A stretch of DNA of 64,000 nucleotides. It comes from Adineta vaga. Its lineage: Eukaryota > Animalia > Rotifera. Location: NCBI GenBank assembly GCA_021613535.1, contig CP075495.1, positions 15,934,001 to 15,998,000 of the forward strand, given 5' to 3'. Shown in pieces: positions 27,540 to 52,952 of the stretch. The notes under the pieces were generated by a model. The model saw nothing but the letters and a program-made list of their open reading frames with translations, was not told where the DNA came from and did not search any database. The translations under genes and the position numbers were made by a program. How positions within the stretch are numbered: the first letter of the stretch is position 1; the number at the start of each line of letters is the position of its first letter.

Positions 27540-30500
27540 ATGGATACTGTGCTACTGCAAAAAATTCAAAAGGCAAAAATTTTGTTACAGCCACCACAGA
27601 GTACGATTACAGCTATTGGATTGCAACAAGGTATCGCTTCCTATGCTCAAGAGCGTGTATGGTTTGAGGAAAAGTTACAAAATGATTCTTCAACATCATT
27701 AACTTCGAATAATGTTGTATTACCTTTGGTGGTTAAATGTGGTTCAATCTCCATTGAACGCATTCGTTCATCTATTCTTACTATTCTTAATCAACATACG
27801 ATTCTTCGAACAGCTTTTGATTTCAATGAAAAGCGTGGTAAACTTATGCAAAAGGTACAATCTAAAGTGGGAATCAACAGCTATTCTTTTGAAGTAACAA
27901 GAAGAACTATTCTGTCAACAAATGAGATGGTTGAATTGATTAAGAACGAATTCGACAATAATTTCAGCGACTTAGATCTCGGATTCGTACTTCGTTGTCA
28001 TTTGGTCAAGATGGGTCTGAATGACGATTATGAGTTGCTGAAACCCGATGATTTAATCATATTTGTTTTTCACCAAATAGTCTTTGATTATAATTCTGTT
28101 GGTCCGTTTATTACTGCATTTACACAAGCGTATGATGAAGTAACATCCAACATGACAAATTTACAATACATTGATTATACTTTGTATGAACAAACACAAT
28201 TAGCCAGCAGAGATCAAGATTCAAACATAAACAAGGCAAAACAATTTTGGTCAACATTAATGCGTGATTATAAGCCATATGGAAGGAATTCATCATTAAC
28301 AACTTCGATGCATGAAATGAAGAAACGCTCTGGTCGAGGTCTTAGTGCTACATTTAATCTGGACTCATATACCGTAGGAGCACAAATCGAATTCGCATCC
28401 TTATATAATGTATCTATGTTTGATTTGGGGCTCGCGTATTATTTTATTTTTCTGTATGAACTGAACAATGGTACGATCAACGATCTATGCGTAGTTTGTC
28501 CGACAGCTAATCGTCCATTAATTGAAATGAAATCAATCATTGGTACATTTATCAATATGTTACCGTACCGTATTCGTATAGATCCAAATCAATCTTTTAT
28601 AAATTTTGTCCAACGTCTTCATACATTATGTGCTGATATTTCTGAACATGATCAATTGCCATATCAATTGATCATGAAAGACACGGATAATTCATATCTG
28701 CCAAAACTGCCCTTTCATTTCCGATTTGATTCAATTGATCCTTTATCAGCAGAAGAAATGGCCCTCGAATCTGAAACGAAAGATGGAACATTGGGATTAT
28801 ATATAGATGGAGTTTGGTTGCATGGTAATAGTGTCATGGCTAACGATCTTACTTTAACGATGATTCACAATCATCAAGAACAGAAAACACAGTATATTTT
28901 CGAATGTTCCACTGACTGTTATAAAGAAAAAGCAGCGGCCGAAATGTGTCGACATTTTGAGGATTTTCTGTCGAATTTCTTCATCAAAAGTTCGACAACT
29001 TCTGACTTCAACAATACTCAACAATCGATTACAAGCTCATCTCATCTATTATCAGGCATCAAACAGTTGTCAAAAGCTAATTTCGAGCAACAATCAATTA
29101 TTGCAGAAACATGTAAGTCTCTCGTTGTAAACTATTCAAGAGCTCTATATTTTACAAATATTTCAGCATTTTCAACAGGTTCAAACTTGAAAACGGATGA
29201 AAAATGTTCATTAGCTCCTAAGGAAGACATACTAAAAATTGCATCAAATAATAAATTAGAAGATACGATTAATAACATTTGGCATGAAGTAATGCACACA
29301 GAGCTTGATTCATATAAAACACAACAGAATTATGACTCATCAATATCAACTACAACTAGCTTCTTTAGTCTTGGAGGTGATTCTCTTCCATTGCTTCAAC
29401 TCTATCGCTCATATCAATCTATATTTCACTTTGATACTGATGCTCTATCAATTCGAACGTTCTTTGAACATGATACTCTAGCTGAACATGCAAAATTACT
29501 AAAAACAGCCATCATAAATGATATTCAATCAAGACAGTGGCATACACTGCATATTAATCATGGTAGTCGGCTTTATGTTAGATCCTTATAAATCATACAC
29601 CTCTTTGGTATTTTCCTAGGTATTGCATCATTCGCTCAGGAGCGTATCTTTCTTGACGAACAAGTCCGCTTTTCCAATAAAATTGCCATATACAATGAGC
29701 TGGTAGTTGTTCGACCTGTCAAAGGTTCATTATCAATGGCTCTTCTATTAGAAGCTCTACGAGCTGTTTTAGAAAAGAATAATATATTGCGTACGTGCCT
29801 CATTTTAGACAATAGTGAAAATAAATTAAAACAATGTGTAACTGATCATCATCAAACATTCACATTTGCAAACGAACAAACGTTTGAGACCGACAATGAA
29901 CTTAGTGATCTCATTTATAAAGGAAAAGTTGATCGAAGTCGTTTTGATTTATCAAATGGGCGGATTTTTGATTGCCAGATACTTCGGAAACAGCAATCAT
30001 TGAACTCAAACTACGACACTGAACAGATAACAGATTCAGACGTGCTCATATTTGGTTTTCATCATACAGTATGTGATAGATTATCTTTTCAAAATTTTCT
30101 CAAAAGTTTAAGTCGTGCTTATAATAATAAAAAAGCATATGCAGGCGAGAAACAGTCTCTACAATACATTGACTATACTGTTTTGGAACGTGTAATGGAT
30201 ATGACATTATCTCGTGAGTTTTGGCATTCACAACTTGATGGATATAACTTTAAATATCCATTTCCTTTTACCGTCGATCGTCATCGTTTACCAAATGATC
30301 AACGATCAGGTGTAGCGTCCACGGCTCAGATCGCGTTCGACGATGACATTGCCTCGTCTTTTTTAAATTATGCATCAACACATCATCTTACGTTTTTTCA
30401 GCTTGGATTAGCGATATTTTATGTATTTTTATTCAAGTTATCTCATGGTCTAACTGATTTGTGTGTTTCTTGCTTAAACGCTAATCGATACAAAAGTGAA

Positions 30501-33500
30501 CTACAAGATATGATTGGAATGTTTGTTTCAACATTGCCTCATCGTCTGCAACTTGATTCTAGTTGTTCATTTGATGAACTTGTGAAACATGTTCGAGACC
30601 AATGTTTATCGGTTCTAGAACATTCCCACTATCCACTGCAACATATCCTAGCTGATTTTCATCTTAATCGATCGAATGTTTCATTTCTTGAGACACTCTT
30701 CGACTTTATTACTGTATCGCCAAATTTCGATCAGCCTTCCTTCGATGGAATAATCCTAGGAGAGGCACCTTTAAGACAGTCATATGAAGTGGCGAAATTT
30801 GATTTTTCAATGACATTCTTCTACAATTCAACTTCAGATGACCATAAACTATGGTGTTCTCTTGTTTGTTCAAGTGAAATATTTGACGAAGCAACAGTTA
30901 AGATCCTCAGCCGACGATTTAATTATCTTGTTGAACAACTAGTTTCTTCAAATCCAAGTACTAAGAGAATAGATACATGTCTTTTATCTATATCAAATAC
31001 TGACCTTATTTTGCCAGAAGAAGCTAACGAAATACAGAACATCGACTTTTGTCGACAACTAGATGTACTAAATGACGGTAAATATTCACTTATTCATATG
31101 TAAAGCATCTCACAAATTATATTTATGAGAAAGACTATGGTGTATCATTTTATTAGGGAACACAAAAGCATTTTTCTGGTTTTCGATGATGTTTTCCGGC
31201 AGTTACTCGGTAGTTCTGCCAGCGCTTTTTTGTACGTTTCACTAAAGTACATTGAACTGTATTTAGGAACTGCCAAAGAACTCCCGACAAGCATCAAGGA
31301 ATACTAGGAATGCTTTTGCATTCTCTCGCAAAATGACACTCTTATAAAAGCTTGCAGGGACTTACATAAATTCTTACAAAAATTATCCACGGTTGACTCG
31401 AGGGGGAAAGAGCGGAACCGTGATTCCTGAATTCCCATGTATTCCGCTCTTTACCCCTTGGGTTGAGCTGCAAAGCGTTTAATCATTTAAATACAGTATA
31501 ATCTTTCCCTAGTGGTCAAAAATCGGGACTTCCCAAAAGTGCACACTGCAGAGATGCGTTGAATATAAAGAGATAACGGTAAAATTACGTATCTTACCAC
31601 TTTTCCATTTCGAACACCGAATAGTGAGTGCTCGGAACGAACTCCCTGTGGAAAAACAGGATGTTCGGGCAGGGTGGTGCGGAATTCATCAGAGCATTTT
31701 TTAAAAAATCATTTCAAAGACAGAAGCTAATCCACGTTCGCTGACTACGCTTCTCTTTCAACCATAGCTTTCCTTTAGTTTTTCTCAAAGGGGGGAAAAA
31801 TCAAAGAGAAAATAGTTAGACCAATGCTACTAAAATAATCAAGGAGAAAGCTAACATGTAAGAAAAAAATTAGAGTGGGAAAATATCTCTCCCGTAATCA
31901 TAGGACCTACCTCACACTCTTAGACATATATCACATCACCACCTTTTCTGCCATTATACCAATTACTCTATCGATTGCAGTATTCTCCAAAACGTTTTCT
32001 ATCTACCTCGATATCTGCTTTCATTATTAATTCTTCCAATAAATTACTTCCGATCTCTCTTAGACAAACGAAACGCATAATATAAGCAAAGAAAGCATTT
32101 AAGAGAATCTAAGAATATGAACGAAGTCTTCCCGTTCTTCAACAGCTCTTGCCATTATTACAGAACTATGAAAAATCATTATCCTTCACACAATATGAAT
32201 AAACATCACGGCACAATAATCAGCCCTAAACTTACTAGCAAAATAGACAATCCTCATAAATCTTTTCAAAAAATTAATTAAATTATTATTTTGTTCAGCA
32301 CCAGCATCCTATGCTCAAACACGTCTGTGGTTTAAAGAACGCTCCAATCCTGATATCGGCAACTCGCAAGTGCCTAGTTACAACATGCCATTTGTTTATC
32401 GGCTATATCTACAACGTACTCTCTCAAGAGAAAAGCTTTCCATTGCACTCCAACTCATTGTCAAAAAGCATCCATCACTTCATACAGCACTCACCTTCCA
32501 TTCTGAAAAACAACAACTCATGCAACAGATCATCAACCATGACGATAATCAAAACAACAAAATGCACTTCCCATTTATCATCAGCACTTATGAAACCGAT
32601 CAACAACTTCAACAGATCGTCTTCGATGAAAACAAAAATTCTCAACTATTTGATTTATCACAAGGTCATGGTTTCCGATGTCATCTTGTTTATCATCAAG
32701 AGACCTCATCTGATGATGGTCTCTTGTCTGACAAAGATCTCATCATCTTCAATTTTCACCATGCTTTCTTTGACTTGCAATCATTGGATATCTTCTTAGA
32801 TGATCTTAACCAAGCATATGTCGCAGGTCAACTATGTACACATGGAGAAAACGATGAAACTGTCCTACGTTATCTTGATTGTAAATATCATTCTCCTATT
32901 CTTCTATTTGTCTTTATCATTATTCTTTCTACACAGATGCTCTCATTGAACAACAGATGTCAATGAGCGGCGCAAGTTTCTTTTGGCTTGATACACTTCA
33001 TGATTGTCAACTCGATCGAACCCTTGCTTTACCTTACGATCGATATCGTCTTTCCAATCAACAGCGAACTGATCGTGCAATATCTCTTACTTTCGATTCT
33101 GATCAACATCTTTCACATCGACTTCTTACTTATGCATCAACAAATAACATTTCATTTGAGCATCTTATTCTTTCACTCTATTTTCTGTTTCTCTACAAAA
33201 TCACCAGTGGTCAAAAGGATCTCTGCATTGCTATCGATACACATGGTCGATATCGACCTGAATTCAACTCAATCATTGGCGTTTTTGTCAATACGATTCC
33301 TCTTCGATGTCAACTTCATGCTCATTGGTCATTCATTCAATTCGTTGATCATGTGTGTGAAATAACAAGAAATTCAATGAAATATTCATACTATCCACTT
33401 CAGCACATTCTCAATCAACATCCTCATCTCTCACATGCTGCATTTCTTCATACATCATTTGAATTCATCGTTTCACCAACTACAGGCAAACACAGAAATA

Positions 33501-36500
33501 CAATTATTATTGGTGACAATCAACTTTCGTTGTTGCCTTTGTCAGTTCATACAAATGAAAATGAAATTATCAGTAAATTTGACTTCTTCGGTAGCTTCAT
33601 ACATAATCCAATGACAAATCAACTTTCATGTACAATGAATGCATCACTTGACTTGTTCACTTGTGAAACAATTCAAACAATGACACAACGATTTCACCTC
33701 ATGTTGCATCATTTATTTTCATCAAATGATACTGGTCGATCTGACACATCCATCTGCGAATTGTCATTCACAATGCCTCATGAACAACTTCTTCTTCAAT
33801 CATTAAACAATACACAAACTATATCTTCTCCTGTTACCACTGAGCATTGTATTCATCAGACATTTGTCAAACAAGTGATAAAACATCCACAAAAACTAGC
33901 AGTTGAATTAGATGAACAATCATTGACATATGCTGAGCTGTTACATTCTGCTCAGATCTTATCCTTATACCTGCTGAATCGGTGCTCAGTTCTTGTAGGT
34001 GATATTGTTTGTCAATGTGTTGAACGAAGTATTACAATGGTAAGCATGTTGAATAAATACATATGTCCGAAATGAAACTATTTTATTCATTTTAGGTAAT
34101 TGGTATCATGGCAATTGAAATGACAGGTAGTGCTTATTGTCCTTTGTCACCTCGAGATCCTCATCATCGTTTGCAATCACTTGCAAAACAAACACACAGT
34201 CGACTTGTTCTTGTTCATTGGTTGACAAACGAGAAGTTTAACGATGATGTTATTTCATTAGATATCGAAATGACACTAATAAGCAATTCTTATATCGAAA
34301 ATCATATGAATTTTGATTCATTGTCCAATATAACAGTAACATCAGAGAATATAGCTTATGTTATTTTTACAAGTGGATCGACAGGAACACCAAAAGCGGT
34401 TCGTTGTCGTTTGCTCTCTCAAAATCTGAATGTCTTGTATATTATTTATAGGTTCAAGTTTCTCAAGGGAATTTCATTCATTATGCTGAATCCTTGACTC
34501 AGATCAATTCATTCAATAGTGATGATGTTGTTATACAAATGGCTCGATGCTCATTTGATATGCATATGCACGAGATAATAGGCATTCTCATCCTTGGGGG
34601 AACTTTAGTAATGCTTCATCCACATGGAACACTCGATTTCGATTACTTGAAGGAAATGTTAGAGAAAAAACAAATCTCATACATGCATTCGGTGCCAAGT
34701 TTACTGTTCAGTTTCTTTACGTACGTTGAACAATCACACAACAAAAATATCTCATTACACCTTCGTTCACTAATTAGCGGTGGTAAGTAGTCATGACAAC
34801 ATATTATTGATGATAGCTCATCACACTATCATTTGTCATAGGTGAACCATTTCCGATTCAGTTTGTCGATATCTTGAGACGACTGGTTATCGCATATTGT
34901 ACTATTTGGAATTCGTATGGTCCAGCTGAAGCAACTATTGCTTGCACGGGGCACATTGTCAATCTCATCGAAAAGTACGAGAATGTTCCGATTGGTCCAC
35001 CTCTTCCTCGATATCGATGCTTGATCTTAGATGAATTTGATCAAGCGGTTGTCATTAATGAAGAAGGCGAATTGATTGTTGGTGGTGTTGGCGTCTTTAT
35101 TGGATATCTTCATCGTGATGATTTAACGTCAAAAGCATTAGTTTATGTCGATAATGAGCTATTCTATCGAACGGGTGACCTTGTTCATGTCGATCACCAT
35201 GGTTTTATTCATTATCGAGGAAGAAAGGATCATCAAATCAAAATACATGGTCAACGTATTGAATTGGGTGAAATAGAACAATGTCTTTTATTGATTTCAT
35301 CAATCTCAGCTTGTATCGTCGTGAAATGGACTGATGATAATCTTATTTCATATATTCAAAGTTTATCTGTTAATGAACAAGAACTTCGTGATCATTGTCA
35401 GTCACATCTTCCATCGCACATGATTCCATCATATTTTATCATTCTTGATAAATTGCCATTGAATACAAATGGAAAAATCGATCGGAAGAGTCTTCCTGCG
35501 CCGCATTTCTCCTCGTCATCTGTTGAGGATGAGATTCAATTCAAATCACCCAGCAATGACATAGAAATCATTGTTCACAACACTTGTTGTGATATATTTC
35601 AACGAAAAAGCATTTCAATCAATACAAATCTTTTCACACTTGGTGCTCACTCTCTTCTCATGATACAACTCTTTCATCGATATAAAACAAAATTTCAATT
35701 ACATTCAAATTCATTTTCTATCACTGATCTTTTTCAACATCCAACTATTTATGATCATGCTCAAATTATTCATCAAACTCTCGACATGACACAAACAATG
35801 CATGACTCAACTTGGTTTTCACTCCATCTAACACAAGGTGAGACATGCACATATGACAGAATGTATGAACAATCCGGAATCTTTTCTTTTCTTCTTCTCT
35901 CTTCTTCTAGCAAAAGCGTCCTATGCACAAGAACGTATCTACTTAGATGAACAAATTCGTTTCACAACACAAACAAGCAATCATAATATGTATGTTATTC
36001 CATTATTATATCGTGTTTCATCTCTTAACAATCACATATCATTATCACGATTGCATCATGCATTGCAAAATGTTATTACAAAACATCGTATTCTACAAAC
36101 AGCTCTTTACCTCGACACAAATGGAATTCTTATACAACATTGCTCTAAGACGAAATCATGTTCATTATCGGTCGATGATCTTCTTCAATATGAAAACTGT
36201 ACGACACATGAAGCTGTCATAAATATTATGAATCAGCCGAGTTTATTTGATTTATCCACAGGCAATGTAATTAACTGTCACATTCTCCGTTCTCATCGAT
36301 CATCATCATCATCTCATAATAACAATAACCAAAATGATGAGCATAATGATGATCTGTTGAATACAGATGATCTTATCCTATTCACTATTCATCATGCATT
36401 CTTCGATGGAACATCAACATCAGTCTTTATTCGTGATCTTTCTCTTGCCTATTCGACGAGCAATTCTTCTGATTCTTCTCCATCTATAAATCTTGATCCA

Positions 36501-39500
36501 ACATTTCAATACATTGATTATTCAGTTCATGAACATCTCATCGACATGACAACATCTCAACAATTTTGGTCTTCACAACTCCATGGATTCGATTTTCAAC
36601 ACCATCATCATCCTTCCTTATTGTGTGTCGATCGAGAACGATCATCACCAACAACTGTTCTCAATCAACGATCAGGTTCAGCATCAATTGCTTCATTTTC
36701 ATTTGATCAACGATTATGTACGTCGTTTGTCAACTATGCATCTCAACATCATCTTACACTGTTTCAACTTGCTCTAGCAACATTCTATGTATTTCTCTTT
36801 CGATTATCTCACTGTCAAACCGATCTATGTATCGCTTCAATTAATTCAAATCGGTATCGATCTGAATTACAAAATATGATTGGAATGTTCGTTGCAACAT
36901 TACCTTATCGTCTTCAACTGGATCGACATTGTTCATTTAATGAACTCGTTCGACAAGTTCGAAATCAATGTCTATCAATTCTTCCACATTCTCATTATCC
37001 ACTTCAACATCTTCTTGCTGATTTTCATCTTAATCAATCGAATGTTTCATTTCTTGAAATAATGTTTGATTTCATTAATATTTCATCTAATCGTAGTTCA
37101 TTTCGTTTGGATGAAACGCCTTTAGAACAAATATCCTTAGAACAATCAGATCAGGTGGCTAAATTCGATTTTTCCTTGCACTTCGTGTACGACGCCACAG
37201 CGTCGAATGACGAACAACTATCATGTGTATTTATTTGTTCATCTGATTTATTCGACGAGAGAACAGTTACACAAATCAGTGTACGATTTCAATATCTTTT
37301 CGAACAGTTGTTTGCATCGAACGAAAGGGCGGAAATAGGAAACGTATTTGATGTACCTATATCGTCATTTAATCTCATTTTACCAGAAGAAGCGAGAGAA
37401 ATCGACGATGTTATGTTTAGCCGACAAGATGACGTGATAAATGAAGGTAATGGTTTGTCTTTGTTGTTTTATATGTTGCCGAAAAGGCTATAGACTAGAC
37501 CAAAAGTGTTCATAGTTGATCTGCTCTTTTGTTGGGTTAATCAGAGTGGACATAAGGTGTAAGATTGATAACTCTTTGTGTTGTACTTGTGGCACAACTG
37601 TATCACGGTATCGTGCAGTCTCGAAGCTTGAATGTGAGTCCGAGTTTTTAGCATAGCAACGGGTGTTTGGATGAAAATCCAATGCTGATCGCCTCACAAA
37701 GCAGAGGTGACGTTTTGTTGAGTTGAGTTAATGTCAAATTTGTGTATTCTTTTATTGTGTCAATCAGGGCTGCCATCCGTACCCCATTTGGGGGTACCGT
37801 ACCCCATTTCGACAATTTGTACCCCAGAAATATTTGTACCTCAGAAGTACAATATTTGTACCCCATTTTGGATAATTTCTTTTTGTATAAGATTAAATCA
37901 TATTTTGCTATAATTAATAAATTTATTGGCTATAATCAAGGGGGAACAAACTGATTTCTAGCCAGAAATCATCGAAAATCAGTGGAAATTACAGAAATCA
38001 TTATATCTGATACATTTAGCTCCAAGATTTCAGGTGATTTCTATGATTCCACTTGATTTCTCTTGATTTTCACTGATTGCACCTGGGAGTCGACCTCTTT
38101 TGAAAGCAGTAGAAATCGCTGGAAATCAGTTTGTTCCACCTTGGCTATAATTGAAATTTTCATTTGCATAGAGACATGATGACTCAATTCTATTGACCAA
38201 ATTGATGACAAGGGCATAATAGTGCTATTCTTATTTTCAGCATTTGTACCTCCTTGTCTTTTCCAGTTTTAGTCACGCAATCGAAATGTAATCTTGTTCC
38301 TTATCAGTCACAGTTTTCTATCATAAAAGTGCTAACTGAAACAATTGATAGTGAATTAACGACACGATTTAATAAGTGCTACCATGAAATCAGAAGATTT
38401 TGATTTTTTGCGCAATCTCACTCAGAATTGATCAAATTTGCGAAAATCAAACCAAAACAGTTATGTGAAATACGTGTATTAGCTAATTCAAACGTAGAAC
38501 GTCTACTTTAAGTGGATATTTGTTATTATTTTTTGAACAGATAGATATCACGAGAAGACATGTATATGTAAACCAGTTGTTTTAAAATAAAAGCTAGAAC
38601 CTGAATAGAACTTTCAAAACGAACAAAGTTGTAAATAATCTTATAAGGTAAAAACCAGTGTTCAAAATCGATTTCACATTCACAGCTATTGTTACTCAGA
38701 AAGAACATGTGTACCCCATAAGTGTACCCCATTTAAAGTAGTATTGTACCTCACTTGTACCCCATTTAGAAATTTTTGTACCCCATTTCGAGCCTGAACA
38801 GATGGCAGCCCTGGTGTCAATCCATCTTTTCTTTTGCCTTCCTCTGCGCCGCTTGCCACCGACCATGCCAAGCATTATATCTTTTTGCAAAGAATCTTGT
38901 CATCGAATTATGTGTCCAAATTATGATAATTTTAACTTCAACATTGAAGCTTCCAGTGAACATTCAGGTTTTATTTCTTCTAAAACAGATTTGTTGGTTC
39001 TTTTTTCCGTCCATGGAATACGAAGTAATCTTCTCCAGCACCTAAGTTCAAAGGCGTCGATTTTTCTTTTATCGGCTTGTTTAATTGTCCAACTTTCACA
39101 TCCATACGTTGTTATCGGAAACACCATCGTTTTGATTATTCTAATTTTGGTGGTCAAGTTGATGTTCTTGCTCTTGATGAGCTTGTCCATAGTGACGGTT
39201 GCCTTTCTACCCATCAGAAGTCTGCTTTTTATTTCGTTACTGCGGTTACCATCGATGTTTATACTAGAACCCAAGAAAATGAACTCTTTGATTATTTCCA
39301 CTTGATCATTGTTGATGTAAAATTCTTGAATGCGTCCATTTGTCATCACGAAGGTCTTTTTCATATTCAGTTTTAGTCTAGCAGATGCACTTTCCTCTTT
39401 TACCTTTCGTAGGAGGTATTGGAAATCATCAGCTGTTTCAGCCAATATTGTAGTTTCATCTGCGTAACGTAGATTGTTGATATTTCGTCCACCAATTTTT

Positions 39501-42500
39501 ATACTACCTGTTGCTTCATCTATTCCAGCTTTCCTCATTATATGCTCTGCATATAAATTAAATAAATATGGAGATAGAATGCAGCCTTGTCGTACTCCTT
39601 TTCAAATGTTGAACCAGTTGGTATTTCCATAGTCTGTTTTCACGGGTGCTTGTTGATCGGTATAAAAGTTCTTCATGAGGATGATCAAATGCTTTGGCAC
39701 ACCCATTTCCAATACTACAGACCAGAGTTTCTCGTGGTCTACACAGTCGAAAGCTTTACTATATTCGATGAAACATAAGTAAAACTCTTTTAGGTATTCA
39801 CGAGCTTTTTCCATCAACCATCGTATATTTGCTATTTGGTCGCGTGTTCCTCTTCCTTTTCTAAATCCTGCTTGTGTAATTGGCATTTCTCGTTCGAGAA
39901 AAGGTTTCAATCACCGTTGTATAATCTTCAACATGATCTTGCTGACATGTGATATGAGAGCGATTGTTCGATAATATGAGCAATCTTTGGCATTTCCATT
40001 CTTCGGTATGAGGATGAATATCGAAGTTTTTCAATCTTCAGGCTATTTTTGTGTTTTCCATATTTGTTGACATAACTTTGTAAGTATTTCCACTGCATCT
40101 TCTTTGATTGACTTGAAGCATTCAATTGGGATGCCATCATGTCCAGGCGCTTTTCCATTTGGTTTTGATTTCATCACCATTTGTTAAATTTTTATCATTT
40201 TGATCTATTAAAGTTCCATTTCTGGGTATAAATTGTCCACGGAAGTATTTTATCTTCTTGTATTCTTCTACTTTTTCACATTCTTCACTAATTTGTTTTT
40301 GTTTGTCTATTCTTGCTGCACGCTGAAAGTCGGCGTTAAGTTTTGCGAAGACTTGTCTGTTTCCATTTGCTTTAGCTTCTCGTCTTTCCTTTGCGATTTT
40401 CAAGGTGTTTGACGATAACCAGTTGTTTTTCTTCTTCTTTGGGATTGTCAGTGTATTTCTTGCCATAATTCTTCAGGTTCCTTATCGACGAGGTTGAGTG
40501 CGTTCGATCTGTTTTTCACTTCTACCTTGTACTCGTACGGAATATTTTGTAGATCGGGTTTTCTGTTTCTGTTGATTTGTGATGTTGTTGAAGCTTGATT
40601 CGAAAACTTGCTACCAAAAGTTCGTGATCATCGCCGTAGTAAGTTCCTGGTCGTGTTTTGACGGATGCTGTTGAGCTTTTCCATCGTCTGTTGCAGAGAA
40701 TATAATCAATTTGGTTTCGATGTAGGCCATTTGGTGTTGTCCATGTGTATAATCGTCGTTTTGCTTGTTGAAAACATGTATTGGTGATGATCATATGATT
40801 TTCTTGGCAGAAATCAATCATTCTCTCCCCAGCTTCATTGCGCTTTCCCAGACCAAATTTTCCAACTATGTCAGGTACTGCCATTTTGCCAACCTTTGCA
40901 TTCCAGTCACCAATTATCAAGATAGCATCCTTCTTTGGAACATCGTTGAGTATTTATTGTAAACCTATGTAGAAATCGTCGATTGTCGATTCATCTGCTT
41001 CTGTGGTTGGTGTGTATATCTGTATTATTGTTAAGTTCGTTGGTTTTCCTTCAAGTCGAATAGAAAACATTCAATCACTTCTTGGATAATATTCGATTAC
41101 TGATTTAACAAGATTCTTGTTTAATACCATGGCCACTCCATTTTTTCTAGTGTTTTGGCTGCCAGAATAATAGACTTCATAGCTGCCGGATGTGAAATGA
41201 CCATTACCTGTCCATTTGAGTTCACTTATTCCAAGGGTGTCTATTTTGATTCGATCCATTTCTGATTTGACTATTTCGAGCTAGCCTTGATTCAGGCTTC
41301 TTACATTCCACGTGCCAATTTTGTGTGTTTTCAAAAAGCTTTCTTCTTTCCGCTTGTATCTGTTTTACTCAGCGATTGAACTTCCTTTCAGTTTTGATTC
41401 AATAGCGTCATTATTTACAGTACTATTTGTACTCGACCTTGGCTCTTCCCCAGCCATACTTTTGATGCCTTCCAACCTGAGAGTCCCATCTTCCGGCACC
41501 ATAGCCTGAAACGTCGTCGACTGTCTGTTCATTGAATTTTCTTGGTAGATATACTGAAGTGATTTACCATTCCCTTCTTCAGCGCAGTTCGAGTTACTTC
41601 GTTGCGACCTACTATCGCTGCTGCCCGATAGTTTCTGCGTACGGGCATTTGCCCTAAAAATATCTTTAAGTTTCTCTCTCGTACCACTTAGAGATTGCAC
41701 GTTCCGACTTTATGAGAGAAACGTTTTCTATCTACCTCGATATCTGCTTTCATTATTAATTCTTCCAATAAATTACTTCCGATCTCTCTTAGACAAACGA
41801 AACGCATAATATAAGCAAAGAAAGCATTTAAGAGAATCTAAGAATATGAACGAAGTCTTCCCGTTCTTCAACAGCTCTTGCCATTATTACAGAACTATGA
41901 AAAATCATTATCTTTCACACAATATGAATAAACATCACGGCACAATAATCAGCCCTAAACTTACTAGCAAAATAGACAATCCTCATAAATCTTTTCAAAA
42001 AATTAATTAAATTATTATTTTGTTCAGCACCAGCATCCTATGCTCAAACACGTCTGTGGTTTAAAGAACGCTCCAATCCTGATATCGGCAACTCGCAAGT
42101 GCCTAGTTACAACATGCCATTTGTTTATCGGCTATATCTACAACGTACTCTCTCAAGAGAAAAGCTTTCCATTGCACTCCAACTCATTGTCAAAAAGCAT
42201 CCATCACTTCATACAGCACTCACCTTCCATTCTGAAAAACAACAACTCATGCAACAGATCATCAACCATGACGATAATCAAAACAACAAAATGCACTTCC
42301 CATTTATCATCAGCACTTATGAAACCGATCAACAACTTCAACAGATCGTCTTCGATGAAAACAAAAATTCTCAACTATTTGATTTATCACAAGGTCATGG
42401 TTTCCGATGTCATCTTGTTTATCATCAAGAGACCTCATCTGATGATGGTCTCTTGTCTGACAAAGATCTCATCATCTTCAATTTTCACCATGCTTTCTTT

Positions 42501-45500
42501 GACTTGCAATCATTGGATATCTTCTTAGATGATCTTAACCAAGCATATGTCGCAGGTCAACTATGTACACATGGAGAAAACGATGAAACTGTCCTACGTT
42601 ATCTTGATTGTAAATATCATTCTCCTATTCTTCTATTTGTCTTTATCATTATTCTTTCTACACAGATGCTCTCATTGAACAACAGATGTCAATGAGCGGC
42701 GCAAGTTTCTTTTGGCTTGATACACTTCATGATTGTCAACTCGATCGAACCCTTGCTTTACCTTACGATCGATATCGTCTTTCCAATCAACAGCGAACTG
42801 ATCGTGCAATATCTCTTACTTTCGATTCTGATCAACATCTTTCACATCGACTTCTTACTTATGCATCAACAAATAACATTTCATTTGAGCATCTTATTCT
42901 TTCACTCTATTTTCTGTTTCTCTACAAAATCACCAGTGGTCAAAAGGATCTCTGCATTGCTATCGATACACATGGTCGATATCGACCTGAATTCAACTCA
43001 ATCATTGGCGTTTTTGTCAATACGATTCCTCTTCGATGTCAACTTCATGCTCATTGGTCATTCATTCAATTCGTTGATCATGTGTGTGAAATAACAAGAA
43101 ATTCAATGAAATATTCATACTATCCACTTCAGCACATTCTCAATCAACATCCTCATCTCTCACATGCTGCATTTCTTCATACATCATTTGAATTCATCGT
43201 TTCACCAACTACAGGCAAACACAGAAATACAATTATTATTGGTGACAATCAACTTTCGTTGTTGCCTTTGTCAGTTCATACAAATGAAAATGAAATTATC
43301 AGTAAATTTGACTTCTTCGGTAGCTTCATACATAATCCAATGACAAATCAACTTTCATGTACAATGAATGCATCACTTGACTTGTTCACTTGTGAAACAA
43401 TTCAAACAATGACACAACGATTTCACCTCATGTTGCATCATTTATTTTCATCAAATGATACTGGTCGATCTGACACATCCATCTGCGAATTGTCATTCAC
43501 AATGCCTCATGAACAACTTCTTCTTCAATCATTAAACAATACACAAACTATATCTTCTCCTGTTACCACTGAGCATTGTATTCATCAGACATTTGTCAAA
43601 CAAGTGATAAAACATCCACAAAAACTAGCAGTTGAATTAGATGAACAATCATTGACATATGCTGAGCTGTTACATTCTGCTCAGATCTTATCCTTATACC
43701 TGCTGAATCGGTGCTCAGTTCTTGTAGGTGATATTGTTTGTCAATGTGTTGAACGAAGTATTACAATGGTAAGCATGTTGAATAAATACATATGTCCGAA
43801 ATGAAACTATTTTATTCATTTTAGGTAATTGGTATCATGGCAATTGAAATGACAGGTAGTGCTTATTGTCCTTTGTCACCTCGAGATCCTCATCATCGTT
43901 TGCAATCACTTGCAAAACAAACACACAGTCGACTTGTTCTTGTTCATTGGTTGACAAACGAGAAGTTTAACGATGATGTTATTTCATTAGATATCGAAAT
44001 GACACTAATAAGCAATTCTTATATCGAAAATCATATGAATTTTGATTCATTGTCCAATATAACAGTAACATCAGAGAATATAGCTTATGTTATTTTTACA
44101 AGTGGATCGACAGGAACACCAAAAGCGGTTCGTTGTCGTTTGCTCTCTCAAAATCTGAATGTCTTGTATATTATTTATAGGCTCAAGTTGCTCAAAAGAA
44201 TTTTATTGGCTGTATTCAATCATTGACTGAGATCAATTCATTCAATAGTGATGATATTGCTATACAAATGGCCCGTTGCTCATTTGATATTCATGTCCAA
44301 GAAATACTCGGTTTACTGATCGTTGGAGCAACTTTAGTAATGCTTCATCCACATGGAACACTCGATTTCGATTACTTGAAGGAAATGTTAGAGAAAAAAC
44401 AAATCTCATACATGCATTCGGTGCCAAGTTTGCTTCTTAGCTTCTTTATGTATGTTCAGCGATCAGACAGTATGCAGATCTCTTTTTATATTCGATCATT
44501 ATGTAGCATCGGTGAGTAACGTATTCAAAAATGTTTGCTGATTGGCGTCATATTGTTATACCATCTAGGTGAACCATTTTCGATTAAGTTAATCGACATC
44601 TTGAGGAAACTTGCCGTGCCACAACTGGTAGTATCGAATCTTTATGGTCCAGCAGAAGCAACTATAGCCTGTACAGGATGTGCCCCGAATATTCTAGAAA
44701 TATCTGAAAGTGTCCCTATAGGCCAACCTCTTCCTCGATATCGATGCTTGATCTTAGATGAATTTGATCAAGCGGTTGTCATTAATGAAGAAGGCGAATT
44801 GATTGTTGGTGGTGTTGGCGTCTTTATTGGATATCTTCATCGTGATGATTTAACGTCAAAAGCATTAGTTTATGTCGATAATGAGCTATTCTATCGAACG
44901 GGTGACCTTGTTCATGTCGATCACCATGGTTTTATTCATTATCGAGGAAGAAAGGATCATCAAATCAAAATACATGGTCAACGTATTGAATTGGGTGAAA
45001 TAGAACAATGTCTTTTATTGATTTCATCAATCTCAGCTTGTATCGTCGTGAAATGGACTGATGATAATCTTATTTCATATATTCAAAGTTTATCTGTTAA
45101 TGAACAAGAACTTCGTGATCATTGTCAGTCACATCTTCCATCGCACATGATTCCATCATATTTTATCATTCTTGATAAATTGCCATTGAATACAAATGGA
45201 AAAATCGATCGGAAGAGTCTTCCTGCGCCGCATTTCTCCTCGTCATCTGTTGAGGATGAGATTCAATTCAAATCACCCAGCAATGACATAGAAATCATTG
45301 TTCACAACACTTGTTGTGATATATTTCAACGAAAAAGCATTTCAATCAATACAAATCTTTTCACACTTGGTGCTCACTCTCTTCTCATGATACAACTCTT
45401 TCATCGATATAAAACAAAATTTCAATTACATTCAAATTCATTTTCTATCACTGATCTTTTTCAACATCCAACTATTTATGATCATGCTCAAATTATTCAT

Positions 45501-48500
45501 CAAACTCTCGACATGACACAAACAATGCATGACTCAACTTGGTTTTCACTCCATCTAACACAAGGTGAGACATGCACATATGACAGAATGTATGAACAAT
45601 CCGGAATCTTTTCTTTTCTTCTTCTCTCTTCTTCTAGCAAAAGCGTCCTATGCACAAGAACGTATCTACTTAGATGAACAAATTCGTTTCACAACACAAA
45701 CAAGCAATCATAATATGTATGTTATTCCATTATTATATCGTGTTTCATCTCTTAACAATCACATATCATTATCACGATTGCATCATGCATTGCAAAATGT
45801 TATTACAAAACATCGTATTCTACAAACAGCTCTTTACCTCGACACAAATGGAATTCTTATACAACATTGCTCTAAGACGAAATCATGTTCATTATCGGTC
45901 GATGATCTTCTTCAATATGAAAACTGTACGACACATGAAGCTGTCATAAATATTATGAATCAGCCGAGTTTATTTGATTTATCCACAGGCAATGTAATTA
46001 ACTGTCACATTCTCCGTTCTCATCGATCATCATCATCATCTCATAATAACAATAACCAAAATGATGAGCATAATGATGATCTGTTGAATACAGATGATCT
46101 TATCCTATTCACTATTCATCATGCATTCTTCGATGGAACATCAACATCAGTCTTTATTCGTGATCTTTCTCTTGCCTATTCGACGAGCAATTCTTCTGAT
46201 TCTTCTCCATCTATAAATCTTGATCCAACATTTCAATACATTGATTATTCAGTTCATGAACATCTCATCGACATGACAACATCTCAACAATTTTGGTCTT
46301 CACAACTCCATGGATTCGATTTTCAACACCATCATCATCCTTCCTTATTGTGTGTCGATCGAGAACGATCATCACCAACAACTGTTCTCAATCAACGATC
46401 AGGTTCAGCATCAATTGCTTCATTTTCATTTGATCAACGATTATGTACGTCGTTTGTCAACTATGCATCTCAACATCATCTTACACTGTTTCAACTTGCT
46501 CTAGCAACATTCTATGTATTTCTCTTTCGATTATCTCACTGTCAAACCGATCTATGTATCGCTTCAATTAATTCAAATCGGTATCGATCTGAATTACAAA
46601 ATATGATTGGAATGTTCGTTGCAACATTACCTTATCGTCTTCAACTGGATCGACATTGTTCATTTAATGAACTCGTTCGACAAGTTCGAAATCAATGTCT
46701 ATCAATTCTTCCACATTCTCATTATCCACTTCAACATCTTCTTGCTGATTTTCATCTTAATCAATCGAATGTTTCATTTCTTGAAATAATGTTTGATTTC
46801 ATTAATATTTCATCTAATCGTAGTTCATTTCGTTTGGATGAAACGCCTTTAGAACAAATATCCTTAGAACAATCAGATCAGGTGGCTAAATTCGATTTTT
46901 CCTTGCACTTCGTGTACGACGCCACAGCGTCGAATGACGAACAACTATCATGTGTATTTATTTGTTCATCTGATTTATTCGACGAGAGAACAGTTACACA
47001 AATCAGTGTACGATTTCAATATCTTTTCGAACAGTTGTTTGCATCGAACGAAAGGGCGGAAATAGGAAACGTATTTGATGTACCTATATCGTCATTTAAT
47101 CTCATTTTACCAGAAGAAGCGAGAGAAATCGACGATGTTATGTTTAGCCGACAAGATGACGTGATAAATGAAGGTAATGGTTTGTCTTTGTTGTTTTATA
47201 TGTTGCCGAAAAGGCTATAGACTAGACCAAAAGTGTTCATAGTTGATCTGCTTTTTGAGGGTGTGGATGGGTTTGGGTGTAGGGTTGATGTAATACTGAC
47301 ACCTACACCCATTCAAAATCACCCACACTCACACCGCCCAGGTAAACCCTACTTTCTTGTTCTCTCTTAAAAAAACGTCAATAATTGGGAAATGATCGCA
47401 AAAGTTATTTCACAAGAAATGTTCTGAATTTTATTTCAGCATTCTGTCTCGTTGTTATAGCACCAGCATCGTATACACAAGCACGTATTTGGCTCGAGGA
47501 CACGAAATCAGAAGCTGCAGCTTATCACATGCCGTTTGTGTATCGTTTTGTTTCATCTAATACTATATCAACGAAACAACTTCAAAATGCTCTTCAACTG
47601 TGTGTGGGTAAACACCAATCACTTCATACATCACTGAACTTTGATACAGAAAAAAATCAACTCATGCAACGAGTTATAGATTCGCACGAGACCTACAATG
47701 GATTATTTAGATTCGTCGAAAGTACTTATGAAACAGAGGAACAACTCTATAATATTATACACGAAGAAAAACATAATTCACAACTTTTTCATCTTGCTCG
47801 TGGACTCGTCTTTCGATGTCATGTAGTTTATTACAAACAAATTTCTTTCGATGCACATCTTTCTGACAAAGATGTCCTTATTTTTAACTTTCATCATGCT
47901 GTTTTTGATCTTCCATCAATGAATCTATTTCTTCATGATCTTAATCAAGCTTATACAACAGATCAACTATTAACAAATGATAATGATAATAATACTCTAC
48001 GCTATCTTGATTGTAACTATAAATATTTCTAATAATTTCTTTTCATGAGACATAATCTCTCTCGCTGTTATTTAGATGCTCTCATTGAACGACAAATGTC
48101 AATGCATGGTGCTAGTAGGTTTTGGCTTGATACTCTTCATGATTGTAACATTAATCAACCTTTATCATTACCGTATGATCGACACCGTCTCACAGATGAA
48201 CATCGAACTAATAATGGAACTTCGGTTTCTTTTCATGTTAATCAAGATCTATCGTATAATTTTCTCTCATACGCATTGTTGAATAATACCACACCTGAAC
48301 AACTAGCACTTGCTATGTACTATGCCTTTTTATTTAAAATAACTAATGGAGAAAAAGATCTATCTATTGGGATAAGTACCGATGGTCGATATAGGAATGA
48401 ACTGAAATCAATTATTGGAGTATTTGGTAATATTATTCCTTTACGATGTGAATTCCATCATTATTGGTCTTGTCATCAACTGATCGAACATGTCAAAGAG

Positions 48501-51500
48501 ATGTCAACAACTAGTATGAAATATTCTTATTTTCCTCTTCAGCATATTTTCGATCAGCATTTGGATACTTCAAAGCTTGCAGCTCTTAGTACATCATTCG
48601 AATACATATCATCCACGTTGAACATTGTCAAAAATGAAACAAACATCGATAATAGTCGACTCTGTTTGATGCCCTTCACTATGAAGACGCATGATAATGA
48701 AATGATGAGCAAGTTTGATTTCATTCTCAAAATTGAACATGATTGCAATATCAATCAACTGTCATGTACAATCAATGCATCACTTGATATATTCAAAGTG
48801 GAAACAGTTCATATGATTCAACAACGATGGTATTCAATGTTGGAACAATTATTTACATCTGTTCATGATCCAAAAATGAACAAATCCATTTATGAATTAT
48901 CGTTACAACTGCCAGATGAACAATTCCTGACACAATCTATGAACAATACACAAACATCAATTTCTTTTATGAGTTGTATTCATCAAAAATTTTCATATCA
49001 AGTAATGAAACATCCGCAAAAATTAGCTGTTGAACTCGATAATCAATCGCTGACATATACTGAATTATTACATTATGCTCAAATATTATCTTTAAATCTC
49101 CTAAAGAAACACTTTGTAAAGGCAGGTGATATAATTTGTCAATGTGTTGACAGGAGTTTATCAATGGTAAACTTGTTGAAATCAATTTTTCGTTCTCATT
49201 TAAATATTCACGCTATTTAGGTTATTGGCATGATGGCCATTGAAATGACTGGTGGTGTCTATTGTCCACTGTCACCTCGAGATCCACGACATCGTTTACA
49301 TGCACTTGTACAACAGACTCAAGCTCGTGTTGTCCTCGTCAATTTTCTGACCAGAACTAAATTTCATAATGAGATCGTACAAGTGGATTTCGATACGAAT
49401 TTGATTGATTATTACGAGAAAACTAATACGGATTTTGAGCGATTATCGAATGTTAGCGTGACTTCGGATAATATTGCCTATGTCATCTTTACAAGCGGTT
49501 CAACTGGCACACCCAAAGCGGTAATTTTATTCTTATTTTTTATATGACTTTAAAATATATTTCTTTGTAAAGGTTCAAATTCGGCATCGTAATTTTGTGG
49601 GATGTATTCAATCTCTACTTCATATTGGCTTATATACATCTAGTGATATTGTAATGCAAATGGCAAGCTGTTCTTACGATGTTCACGTGCAAGAAATTCT
49701 AGGAACATTGATAATTGGTTCGAATCTTGTATTTCTTCACCCTGAAGGAAACATGGATGTGGAATATGTTGTAACAGTTTTGAAGGAAAAACAGATAACA
49801 TACATGCAAAGTGTTCCAGCATATCTCAGTTATATGTGTGATTTTCTCGTAAAAAATGATCATCCAAAATTGGAAACATTACGCACTCTTGATATCGGCG
49901 GTAAGATATTTGCATAAATAGTCAGAAATTCTCTATTAATGTTTTCTAGGCGACAAAAGTACAGTTCAACTATTTGAAAAACTATACAAACACATATTAC
50001 AAAATGCTAGAATAGTGCATTTGTATGGACCGGCAGAAACAACCATTGACTGTACATATCACTTCGTTGATATGCAACTCGACAAAACAAGTGCGCCAAT
50101 TGGCCGCTCACTGCCCAGTTATAAGTGTATGATTCTGGACGAGTTCTTACAACAAGTTCTTGTTCATCAAGATGGTGAATTATATGTTGGAGGTGTTGGT
50201 GTCTTTGCTGGCTATTTGGGACATAACGAGCTGACAGGAAAGGCACTGTTAGTTATCAATGGCGAGATATTTTACCGAACAGGTGATCTAGTTATGTTGG
50301 ATAAAAATAATCTTCTTCATCATAGAGGCAGAAAAGATTATCAAGTCAAATTACACGGACAGCGGATTGAATTAGGAGAAATCGAAAAATGCTTACTAAG
50401 TGCACCTATTTCTGCTTGTATTGTTACGAAATGGAATGATAGCCAGCTAGTTGCTTATATTCAAAGCTCTACTATTGATGATAAACAAATACGTGAACAT
50501 TGCCAAACTTATTTACCGTCCCATATGATTCCATCCAAATTTATTATCCTTGAACAATTACCATTAAACGCCAATGGAAAAGTAGACCGCAAACAACTAC
50601 CATCGCCCAAAAACCTCATTCAGTTCGATAACTACACTAGTGATGCAGAACCACTAACACCATTGGAAGAGCGTCTATGTCGTATCTTTAGCGAAGCATT
50701 TCACAGTGATTCACCTGACGTAAATATGTCCTTTGGACATATGGGTGGCACATCATTAGATGCTATAAGAGCACTCTGGCTGATACGAAAAGAAATTTGT
50801 AATAAAATCGATGCCAGTACATTATTTTTAAATCCATCTGTTCGACAACTCGCAAAAGCCATCGAACCACTGCTAATTATACTTGACGAATCATCTGTGA
50901 CTCCTATGACTCAAGAAACTGTCGACGAGAAGGAAAGGCCTATGCCATCTTTATGTATTGAGTTAATAGGCATTCTATTAATTATAGCTCATGGGTTAAG
51001 CCCCCTATGGTCATTGTATTATTTTAACTTTCCCATCGCTCTTATTTTTATACCCGTCTTTCATCTTTTATCATACGTTGTTTGCCAGCGTTTAATGTTT
51101 CTTCAACAGGAGACTGTGAAACGAAACAAAAAATTATATTCATGGCAATATTATCGTTGGTGGTTTTTAAATAGTTTATGGTTGACAAATAATTCTTATT
51201 GGTTGCAACATTTAATAGGCACACCTTTTTACAATTTTTATTTACGATTATGTGGCGCCAAAATTGGATGTCATGCACATATCTACACAACATTGATTGA
51301 TGCACCTTGGTTAATTGAAGTCGGTGAATCGACATTTATCGGCGAAGAAGTGGTGTTTTCAAATTTATCTTATCAAGATCAAACTTATGAACTTCATCCA
51401 ATTTATATTGGATCGCATTGTTCTGTCAACACACGTAGTATACTATATGACAAGGTGATTATCGAAGACCATGTCTATGTGGAACCTATGTCTGCCATTA

Positions 51501-52952
51501 CTGGTCATATTATGCTATCTTCTGACCGAATAGTTATTAAAGATCGGTCAATATCGTTGAATCAAACAATATATCAGTTCATTTGCCTAGTTGGTCTTTT
51601 CTTTATCCACAGTATAACTTTTTTCTTAGCATATTGCGTTTATCGCTGTTTTGTTATTCTATCGGTACCGTTGCCTATTCGACTTACACTAATTTGGTTG
51701 GTTTGGAGTTTAATGAGTATTTTTATTGTCCTTCTCTTTTTAAAGTTTATAGTGCGTTCTGTTACTATAGGACATTACAAACTTAATTCGTACTATTATC
51801 TTCATAAATTTTGGTTACGTCAATTGATCGTTACATCATTTTCTCATTCTCTAGATCTTATACCCGAGTACGAGGCTTTTGCACCAATTATTTTGCGTTG
51901 GCTAGGTGCTCGTATTGAAAACGATGTCAAATTCAGTGAATTTCGACAAATTTTATATTTTCCATCAAATCTGCTTAGTGTTGACAGTGGTGTTACAACG
52001 TTTCTGGGAGCTAAACTTCTTCCTTATGAAATGACAAGAGAAGGTCTTTGTTGTTTTGACCATACACACCTTAGCTTCAATGCAACTCTTGGTAATTGGT
52101 GTACAATAATGCCCGGTGCACAGTTTTCATCTGGTATCACAGTCAGTAGTCTTTCATTAGTGACACGCGAAACAGTTAATATGGATGCTAATAAGATATT
52201 CCTCGGCATTCCAGCTCGTGAAATGCCTTTTGCAGTAGTCGATAACATGTCTGCTGAAAATGACTTATCATTTTATTCTAATTCGTTCTCGATATCTGCT
52301 CTATTAATTCATATCATTATTTTTTTCATAATCAGATGTGCAACTATCAGTCTATATATATTGTTACCAGCTTCTGTTGCAACATTTATGCTTCTCATTA
52401 TTTTTTGTATAGCATGCCGTTATTTTATTTTCATTGCTTTTGGAATCAAACACAAATCTTCAGATCTTATTACCCTTGTGAACGTGATAATACTTAAATT
52501 TGTAGTAAGTTATTGGGTATTCTTCGCACCATACTTATCAGGAACACAATTTTTTGTGTTTATATTCCGTGTTATGGGTGCTAAAATTGGATACGATGTT
52601 ATTTTGAACGGTATATTATGCCTTACTGATCCCTTTCTTACAAGTATTGGTAACCATGTTCGCTTACAAATGGGCGCTCATATTGTGGTAGGAAATCATG
52701 TTTTATGCTAGACTTCATAAAGAGCATTTTTTAAATAAATTTTTTAAGTGTCATTCATTTGAACAACGTTTGTCGAAGTTCAAGCATGTCACTGTCAATG
52801 ATTCCAGCATACTTATGAGCAACGTAGCAGTATATTCAGGATCAACACTTGGTGGGCAAAATCGTCTTTTACCATTAACATTTGTGATGAAAAATGACCA
52901 ACTGCAACCTAACACAAATTGGTATGGTGTACCAGCACAAAAAATTGTTTAA
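27540..52952 (+). CDS. Giant multimodular nonribosomal peptide synthetase, C-T-C-C-A-T-C-C-A-T-C-C-A-T plus Pls/PosA-like membrane terminal domain; 21 exons, about 6113 aa
   Basis: Exons: 27540-29112, 29167-29562, 29620-31077, 32299-32880, 32937-34039, 34096-34398, 34452-34782, 34842-35837, 35911-37446, 42028-42609, 42666-43768, 43825-44127, 44181-44511, 44569-45564, 45638-47173, 47461-48012, 48076-49166, 49221-49520, 49573-49900, 49950-52687, 52749-52952. Sum is 18342 nt and all introns are GT-AG. C motifs: SYAQER/SYAQTR and HHxxxD. A motifs: YVIFTSGSTGTPK, YGPAE, YRTGD, GRKDxQxKxHGQRIELGEIE and NGK. T motifs: GGDSL, GAHSL, GAHSL and GGTSL. The true 5' start may lie further upstream (acceptor-like site near 27524). 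Confidence 0.9.
31990..37525 (+). repeat. NRPS module-1 copy of a 5.5-kb direct duplication
   Basis: Matches 41719-47252 at offset 9729, then 9727 after the divergent intron. Confidence 0.95.
37765..38813. mobile_element. hAT-like non-autonomous element inserted in the RTE 3' end
   Basis: TIR CAGGGCTGCCATC / GATGGCAGCCCTG, 8-bp TSD GTGTCAAT (37757-37764, 38814-38821), subterminal GTACCCCA repeats. Confidence 0.9.
37937..38143. mobile_element. P-element-like MITE nested in the hAT-like element
   Basis: TIR CAAGG.GGAACAAACTGATTTC and 8-bp TSD GCTATAAT (37929-37936, 38144-38151). Confidence 0.8.
41719..47252 (+). repeat. NRPS module-2 copy of the 5.5-kb direct duplication
   Basis: Identical translated ORFs to module 1 except in the A-domain pocket region 44181-44725. 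Confidence 0.95.
50930..52952 (+). other. Pls/PosA-like NRPS terminal region: three repeats of TM segments plus LbH-like units
   Basis: Three repeats: LYSWQYYRWW..GTPFYNFYLRLCGAKIG, GHYKLNSYYY..ILRWLGARIE and SGTQFFVFIFRVMGAKIG. Each is preceded by hydrophobic TM segments. Ends in CHSFEQR..TFVMKND..WYGVPA. Confidence 0.85.

Follow-up and report, generated by a model that had tools for sequence, protein, structure and literature searches.

An Adineta vaga nonribosomal peptide synthetase gene that ends in a divergent Pls/PosA-type membrane domain

A stretch of 64,000 nucleotides from the bdelloid rotifer Adineta vaga (assembly GCA_021613535.1, contig CP075495.1, positions 15,934,001 to 15,998,000; hereafter, the window) contains a gene for a multimodular nonribosomal peptide synthetase (NRPS), located at window positions 27540-52952 of the plus strand, whose last domain is a membrane domain of the Pls/PosA type. 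Pls is the epsilon-poly-L-lysine synthetase of Streptomyces albulus, and PosA is the delta-poly-L-ornithine synthetase of Acinetobacter baumannii. When the reading frames are joined through GT..AG introns, the gene consists of 20 exons with 18,396 coding nucleotides and encodes 6,131 amino acids; an ATG at 27540 opens the frame, and a TAA at 52950-52952 closes it. All 19 introns begin with GT and end with AG, and no stop is found either within the exons or in the codons split between them. The introns are 49-287 nt long, save for one of 1,221 nt and one of 4,581 nt. The original prediction, made from the letters of the window, had described an intact frame in 21 exons; the frame is indeed intact, but the number of exons is 20.

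Domains were assigned with Pfam and NCBIfam profiles, run on single exons and open reading frames (ORFs). Counted exon by exon, the Pfam matches comprise seven condensation (C) domains (Condensation), three adenylation (A) domains (AMP-binding with AMP-binding_C), and four thiolation (T) domains (PP-binding). These totals and the length of the frame agree with the seven C, three A and four T domains in about 6100 residues that had been predicted. The order of the domains is C1-T-C-[C-A-T-C]-[C-A-T-C]-C-A-T, followed by three units that each include a pair of transmembrane (TM) helices and a left-handed beta-helix (LbH). All parts of the gene described below are on the plus strand.

Exon 1 (27540-29562) encodes C1 (approximately 27636-28982; Condensation, E = 2.3e-39) and T1 (approximately 29337-29498; PP-binding, E = 1.8e-4). 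T1 has no A domain in front of it; it must either be loaded in trans or be vestigial. Exon 2 (29620-31077) encodes C2, with the motif HHTVCDR (Condensation, E = 8.1e-47). This domain is of the same type as C4 and C6, and the DNA of exon 2 is 77% identical to 36721-37057 and 46448-46784. Module 1, C3-A1-T2-C4, occupies six open exons (32299-32880, 32937-34039, 34096-34398, 34452-34782, 34842-35837 and 35911-37446), with the motifs HHAFFDL in C3 and HHAFFDG in C4. It is followed by intron 8 (37447-42027; 4,581 nt), inside which lies a decayed non-LTR retrotransposon, and then by module 2, C5-A2-T3-C6 by Pfam, at 42028-42609, 42666-43768, 43825-44127, 44181-44511, 44569-45564 and 45638-47173. Module 3, C7-A3-T4 by Pfam, extends over 47461-48012, 48076-49166, 49221-49520, 49573-49900 and the first part of 49950-52687, up to position 50863; C7 has the motif HHAVFDL, and T4 is at approximately 50669-50863. 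The HHxxxD motif is thus kept in C2 to C7. The A-domain core motifs FTSGSTGTPKA, YGPAE, GEL..GG, YRTGD and NGK.DRK are also kept, and the serine motifs of T1 to T4 are GGDS, GAHS, GAHS and GGTS, respectively.

Two consecutive C domains are found three times in the gene, in the pattern T-C-C-A (29620-33750, 35911-43480 and 45638-48890). The same pattern recurs in most of the paralogues in this genome (loci L014-L033). We considered whether the extra C domains might be epimerization (E) domains, and rejected this assignment: all of them start with the C-type motif S(Y/F)AQxR, and GHGR occurs in none. Their closest solved relatives are ordinary C domains, e.g., 5U89, Txo1/2, 4ZXH and 2JGP.

The terminal domain (50939-52952) matches both the NCBIfam profile TIGR02353, which describes the Pls/PosA family, and Hexapep, a Pfam profile matched in the last large exon. 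In the ORF at 50015-52708, residues 378-890 match TIGR02353 with E = 2.7e-32 and 112.0 bits (profile positions 79-631 of 695), while the last exon matches profile positions 621-695 with E = 8.8e-13 and 47.5 bits. Together, the two last exons cover positions 79-695 of the profile. The first unit consists of TM pair 1 (50939-51100) and LbH1 (approximately 51149-51541); the second, of TM pair 2 (51566-51778) and LbH2 (approximately 51809-52261); and the third, of TM pair 3 (52271-52534) and LbH3, which is split between 52544-52687 and the last exon, 52749-52949, by the intron at 52688-52748. In the large exon, hydropathy analysis locates three hydrophobic pairs (residues 330-383, 539-609 and 774-861), each of them followed by a hexapeptide-like stretch. 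T4 and the membrane domain are encoded within one and the same exon (49950-52687), i.e., the fusion of an animal assembly-line NRPS to a domain of this type, as originally predicted, is borne out. No match to a thioesterase (TE) or a reductase (R) was found in the NRPS exons with Pfam or NCBIfam, and the membrane domain is the last domain of the protein.

An AlphaFold2 model of the terminal domain was calculated from the window segment 51032-52687 together with 51 aligned relatives, and ends 67 residues before the C-terminus. In this model (pLDDT 88.9, pTM 0.89), pairs of long helices alternate with coils of beta-strands. A Foldseek search with the model returned only LbH acyltransferases, with weak scores and matching one unit each; examples are maltose O-acetyltransferase, Vat(D), AntD, LpxA/D and QdtC. 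No solved structure of a Pls/PosA terminal domain was found in the PDB, either by sequence or, with Foldseek, by fold. The model agrees, however, with the AlphaFold picture of PosA, in which there are six TM helices, and three tandem domains form a single LbH pseudo-trimer (PMC10522769). Across the last intron of the gene, the H, E, R and K of the family motif QTHLFEDRxMK are kept, as is W.G.PA at the end. Thus, profiles, hydropathy and structure prediction all arrive at the ending that had been foreseen, with TM helices and LbH repeats and with neither TE nor R; the terminal domain is a divergent member of the Pls/PosA family, in which three TM helix pairs alternate with three LbH units.

Parts of the gene are present in nine sequencing runs from three studies, and contigs of four runs were aligned to 46960-52952. 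Six GT..AG introns are precisely absent from these contigs, namely 47174-47460, 48013-48075, 49167-49220, 49521-49572, 49901-49949 and 52688-52748. Because their removal is precise, the contigs derive from spliced RNA. The joints of all six introns are seen in contigs from two studies (runs X1/X2 and X6); run X5 (organism B) has two of the six, in a sequence that differs by 1-2%. The X6 contig, of 5,468 nt, begins at 47154, in the last stretch of the C6 exon, and continues past the stop codon to 235 nt beyond 52952; of an X2 contig, 212 nt fall on the C6 exon and 502 nt on the C7 exon. The exon that ends at 47173 is joined in these contigs to the exon that starts at 47461, which argues against 47461-52952 being a gene of its own, an outcome that would have undermined the original prediction. 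Other contigs that end at 47173 run on with 30 letters that are found only at 32299 and 42028. This joint connects an exon of the C4/C6 type to the opening exon of a module, which shows that the mRNA carries two consecutive modules and that the 4,581-nt intron at 37447-42027 is spliced out. The acceptor at 32299 is identical in sequence to the RNA-supported acceptor at 42028. Introns 1-7 and 9-13 were placed by phase, by their GT..AG ends and by analogy to module 3, whose introns are confirmed by RNA, except that the intron at 29563-29619 and the donor at 31078 were placed by phase and GT..AG alone. The NRPS gene is, in sum, intact, spliced and transcribed.

Modules 1 and 2 are part of a tandem duplicate. 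In a self-comparison of the window, 31990-37531 and 41719-47257 are 97.5% identical across 5,556 nt, i.e., a duplicated unit of 5.5 kb whose boundaries run from intron to intron. Of the 143 differences between the copies, 141 fall within 34400-35000. This patch of approximately 600 nt (34400-35000 versus 44130-44730) corresponds to approximately 165 residues of the A domain, including the specificity pocket; protein identity between modules 1 and 2 is 73% and 58% in the patch, as against 100% in its flanks. The patch looks like a subdomain swap, or like the trace of a gene conversion that spared the pocket. A pair of nearly identical modules that differ in the A-domain pocket alone is a clean natural case of specificity swapping. 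The spacer between the copies is 4.2 kb of unique sequence and holds the retrotransposon of intron 8. This element is on the minus strand, with a reverse transcriptase at 38921-39910 and an AP-endonuclease at 40525-40920, and was recognized by Pfam matches to RVT_1 (E = 7e-7 and 1e-7) and Exo_endo_phos (E = 2.6e-4) in broken minus-strand ORFs. The three inter-module introns (31078-32298, 37447-42027 and 47174-47460) are all in phase 1 and have donor and acceptor contexts in common, and every module cassette of the gene both starts and ends in phase 1. Because the three introns share this phase, whole modules could be lost or doubled in frame.

The hybrid is not a one-off. An exhaustive search of representative sequences with the terminal domain yielded 852 proteins, and the top matches, 32-52% identical in our alignment, are from Rotaria magnacalcarata, Rotaria sp. 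Silwood2, Adineta steineri, A. ricciae and A. vaga. Labelled 'hypothetical protein' or 'unnamed protein product', many of these bdelloid matches are long; P0028 of A. vaga, for example, has 3,646 residues and contains three each of the A, C and T domains. The same genome contains 13 further copies of the terminal domain, 12 of them without stops; one (L010) is identical to A. vaga UJR38881.1. In all ten paralogue copies examined, several C, A and T domains are found on the same strand within 20 kb upstream. The NRPS gene is therefore one of at least 11 multimodular genes with a Pls-type ending in this genome, and the family is present in both Adineta and Rotaria.

The next tier of matches consists of proteins of approximately 1,300-1,360 residues, which are 16-22% identical in the same alignment and 24-30% over the matched stretches. 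Some of them, e.g., P0065, are named as members of the Pls/PosA family. Homology to the bacterial single-module type extends over nearly the whole domain, as in the case of P0074 (query residues 7-498 against 667-1162). In a tree of the terminal domain only, a branch with an SH-aLRT support of 99 sets apart 24 rows, from bdelloids or from this genome; three rows in the bdelloid clan are unnamed metagenome proteins. Judged from these sequences, the bdelloid copies form a branch of their own within the terminal-domain family, apart from the single-module bacterial enzymes. Adjoining the bdelloid clan, in a placement that is unsure on account of a long branch, is P0075, a protein of 3,171 residues in which formyltransferase-A-T-C-A-T is followed by the same terminal domain. 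Its locus (GCA_017884045.1, contig JABBYD010000051.1, L001:8001-17516) is eukaryotic and is intronless in the gene call, and the neighbouring genes encode a histone, DWNN and 7tm_3/LRR proteins. Pls-type domains were also seen in other contexts, all of them uncharacterized: among P0097, P0072, P0077 and P0118, the domain follows KS-AT-T (polyketide-like) or ODP (beta-lactamase fold)-A-T, or is fused to PPTase or DUF418 after A-T. In Diplonema, a Pls-type terminal domain stands behind a partial C-A-T.

The specificity codes of the three A domains are DMHHIGSIAK (A1), DIQHCILIAK (A2) and DVQQDGLIDK (A3). A3 has Gln where the diamino-acid polymerases have Glu, at position 3, and so does not show the pair of residues that marks a diamino-acid pocket (Asp at position 1 and Glu at position 3). 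With the same column mapping, Glu is found at position 3 in all 16 single-A-domain Pls-like proteins outside the bdelloid clan, with codes such as DAESIGTVVK, DMEH..VTK and DLEDIGSVVK. The first of these is a lysine code, and the Glu is conserved in all such polymerases (PMC10522769). The last A domain of the paralogue P0028, DVESSGFITK, does have the Glu. A homopolymer of the lysine or ornithine type would not be expected from the 6,131-residue NRPS, and the polycationic tail that had been suggested for its product is disfavored, because A3 lacks this residue.

The window is AT-rich (approximately 35% GC) and contains no N. Its source genome comprises 100.8 Mb in six contigs, and the NRPS gene is approximately 290 kb away from one end of a contig of chromosome size (16,274,841 bases). 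The gene is flanked by fragments of a PIF1-like helicase (18470-18898), a pogo-like DDE_1 (57240-57674) and a piggyBac-like transposase (58226-59089), which fit a subtelomeric, transposon-rich region; the flanks also contain NUDIX and a methyltransferase. Among the ten flanking ORFs of the window that were scanned, none encodes a biosynthetic partner or a separate release domain.

How, then, does the assembled chain leave this protein? We consider it probable, though well short of certain, that in this intact three-module NRPS of a bdelloid family the divergent Pls/PosA domain frees the T4-bound peptide by membrane-bound aminolysis. In this mechanism, T1 would be loaded in trans, and the three modules would add three residues. 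Because a C domain is directly upstream of A3, T4 should carry a peptide. In Pls and PosA, the amine that attacks the aminoacyl thioester on the T domain comes from the side chain of either a free monomer or the growing chain, a reaction that requires the terminal domain (PMC10522769). Analogously, at the cytosolic face of the membrane, an amine would attack the peptidyl thioester on T4, as happens to T-bound lysine in Pls, and the chain would leave as an amide, possibly passing through or into the membrane. The amine might come from a small molecule, from a lipid head group or from a product released earlier. If the product itself had a free amine, repeated rounds could give rise to oligomers of the peptide unit.

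Several observations weigh against this reading. C1 has the motif HQxxxD, that is, the second, catalytic His is gone, and this mechanism does not account for the tandem C-C pairs. The match of the terminal domain to TIGR02353, which had been anticipated, is clear by E-value, but the bit scores fall far short of the curated cut-off of 423.1, a value that applies to the whole protein, whereas exons 19 and 20 were scored singly. In all or nearly all of the 14 bdelloid rows, many columns that are conserved across 36 relatives from outside the bdelloids carry other residues, as is the case for the D, E and D of alignment columns 139, 425 and 781. Because of these replacements, the chemistry or the acceptor of the bdelloid domain may differ, or catalysis may have been lost. 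To our knowledge, no paper has established the catalytic residues of any Pls/PosA terminal domain. We likewise know of no product of this gene, nor of any bdelloid NRPS gene. As to the transcripts, the run records guess, rather than state, that the material is RNA, although the exact removal of introns argues that it is. Intron 8 is the only one of the first 13 introns to have RNA support, the others being placed by sequence logic. The contigs link exons 14-20, and none covers exon 1 to exon 20 as one molecule.

Of the explanations that differ in what the terminal domain does, one is that it is a mere membrane anchor or export conduit, and that release occurs by hydrolysis or through a separate enzyme. 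The low TIGR02353 score and the loss of so many family-conserved residues in the bdelloid clan would be consistent with such a role, as would the decay of the C1 active site, by which catalysis is evidently not needed of every domain. Nonetheless, we regard it as unlikely: neither the gene nor the scanned flanks offer any other release domain; this one has been kept at the end of 11 or more multimodular paralogues, although their identity is only 36-52%, with 12 of 13 frames open; and the H..E.R..K of the third beta-helix is retained in a domain whose AlphaFold2 model is confident. Another explanation is that A3-T4 iterates as in Pls, so that the terminal domain links copies of a single amino acid into an isopeptide tail that is either free-standing or attached to the assembly-line peptide. 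The domain is, after all, homologous to those of homopolymer synthetases; the Asp residues at positions 5 and 9 of the A3 code could contact a basic side chain; and P0028 shows that Glu can occur in the last A domain of a paralogue. Yet A3 itself has Gln in place of the Glu seen in every control and reported as conserved (PMC10522769), and the C domain just before A3 implies that T4 should receive a peptide, and not a monomer only. Iteration of this kind therefore strikes us as improbable.

Two further explanations concern the gene rather than its last domain. The locus might yield shorter enzymes instead of one protein of 6,131 residues, through separate transcripts or the skipping of modules, e.g., from exon 8 to exon 15. 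All inter-module junctions being in phase 1, the frame would survive such skipping; moreover, the exon ends at 37446 and 47173 are identical in sequence, so that the donor of the RNA joint into 47461 could equally be exon 8 or exon 14, and there is no whole-gene contig. But the splicing of a C4/C6-type exon to a module's opening exon, as seen in the RNA contigs, needs two tandem modules per transcript, and both copies of the duplicate are fully open, which together make shorter enzymes rather unlikely. The duplicate, in turn, might be an artefact of assembly, such as two alleles placed in series, in which case the real gene would have two A modules. The copies are identical outside the 600-nt patch, and subtelomeric NRPS regions are reported to be hard to assemble (PMC11258130). 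Against this, a module-to-module splice joint is present in RNA, and the copies are separated by the unique 4.2-kb spacer with its retrotransposon, where the assembly has no gaps; we deem an artefact highly improbable.

Release of the T4-bound peptide by aminolysis, the reading that we prefer, can be extended to the family as a whole. It is conceivable, albeit speculative, that bdelloids made the membrane domain of poly-lysine synthetases the standard off-loader of a family of multimodular NRPSs, which would ligate their peptides to amines at a membrane and, where these peptides have a free amine, couple them head-to-tail into sequence-defined oligomers for export. If true, this chemistry of release and polymerization would be new for any multimodular NRPS, and would be found in an animal. 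In any case, one and the same membrane-embedded ending is common to a large branch of the bdelloid NRPS genes; previous studies of it concern single-module homopolymer synthetases alone, and it points to a release step outside the scope of standard NRPS prediction tools. It provides a handle for product discovery, i.e., to look for amide-capped or oligomeric, membrane-associated peptides, and many natural variants from which to learn how the structurally unsolved Pls/PosA domain chooses its acceptor.

The bdelloid NRPS genes as such are well documented: there are approximately 50 copies, of foreign origin, intron-bearing and subtelomeric, and some of them are induced by pathogens, with a fungus known to induce some of the NRPS/PKS genes (PMC3846280, PMC10531068, PMC11258130). 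The studies of bdelloid NRPS and polyketide synthase (PKS) genes, namely Arkhipova 2013 (PMC3846280), PMC10531068 and Nowell 2024 (PMC11258130), screened A, T and C domains only, and text searches of these papers and their supplements turned up no term for a Pls-type, transmembrane or hexapeptide ending. Metazoan homologues are mentioned in PMC10522769, where a search of the supplement returned Nematostella only and where the network is limited to proteins of 1,100-1,800 residues. A literature search for work linking bdelloids or rotifers with poly-lysine synthetase, NAPAA or Pls-type domains found none. The original prediction that no such architecture had been described in an animal agrees with this outcome, in that we found no paper describing it; the architecture and the gene family are thus undescribed, though the proteins are already present, unnamed, in public databases.

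Among known systems, the NRPS gene resembles the horizontally acquired NRPS/PKS family of bdelloids in being intron-bearing, multi-copy, of foreign origin, transcribed, and located in a subtelomeric, transposon-rich setting. With P0075, it shares the multimodular organization and the same terminal domain; P0075, itself uncharacterized, differs in having no introns in the gene call, another starter and no tandem C-C. As compared with terminal condensation-type release domains, such as fungal C_T and amine-capturing C domains like VibH, the proposed release would be alike in that the attack of an amine frees a T-bound acyl or peptidyl chain with no thioesterase involved; those domains, however, have the soluble, chloramphenicol-acetyltransferase-like C fold, in contrast to a membrane-embedded LbH pseudo-trimer. 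A likeness in domain plan is seen with Pls and PosA (TIGR02353), in which A-T is likewise followed, in one polypeptide and with neither TE nor R, by a domain of approximately 650-700 residues with three TM pairs and three LbH units. Whereas these bacterial enzymes have a single A-T module in approximately 1,300 residues, with no C domains, and load a diamino acid through a D-x-E code, the NRPS gene has seven C, three A and four T domains and an A3 without the position-3 Glu; it resides in an animal, contains introns, scores under the TIGR02353 cut-off, and has replaced family-conserved residues of the membrane domain that the two systems have in common.

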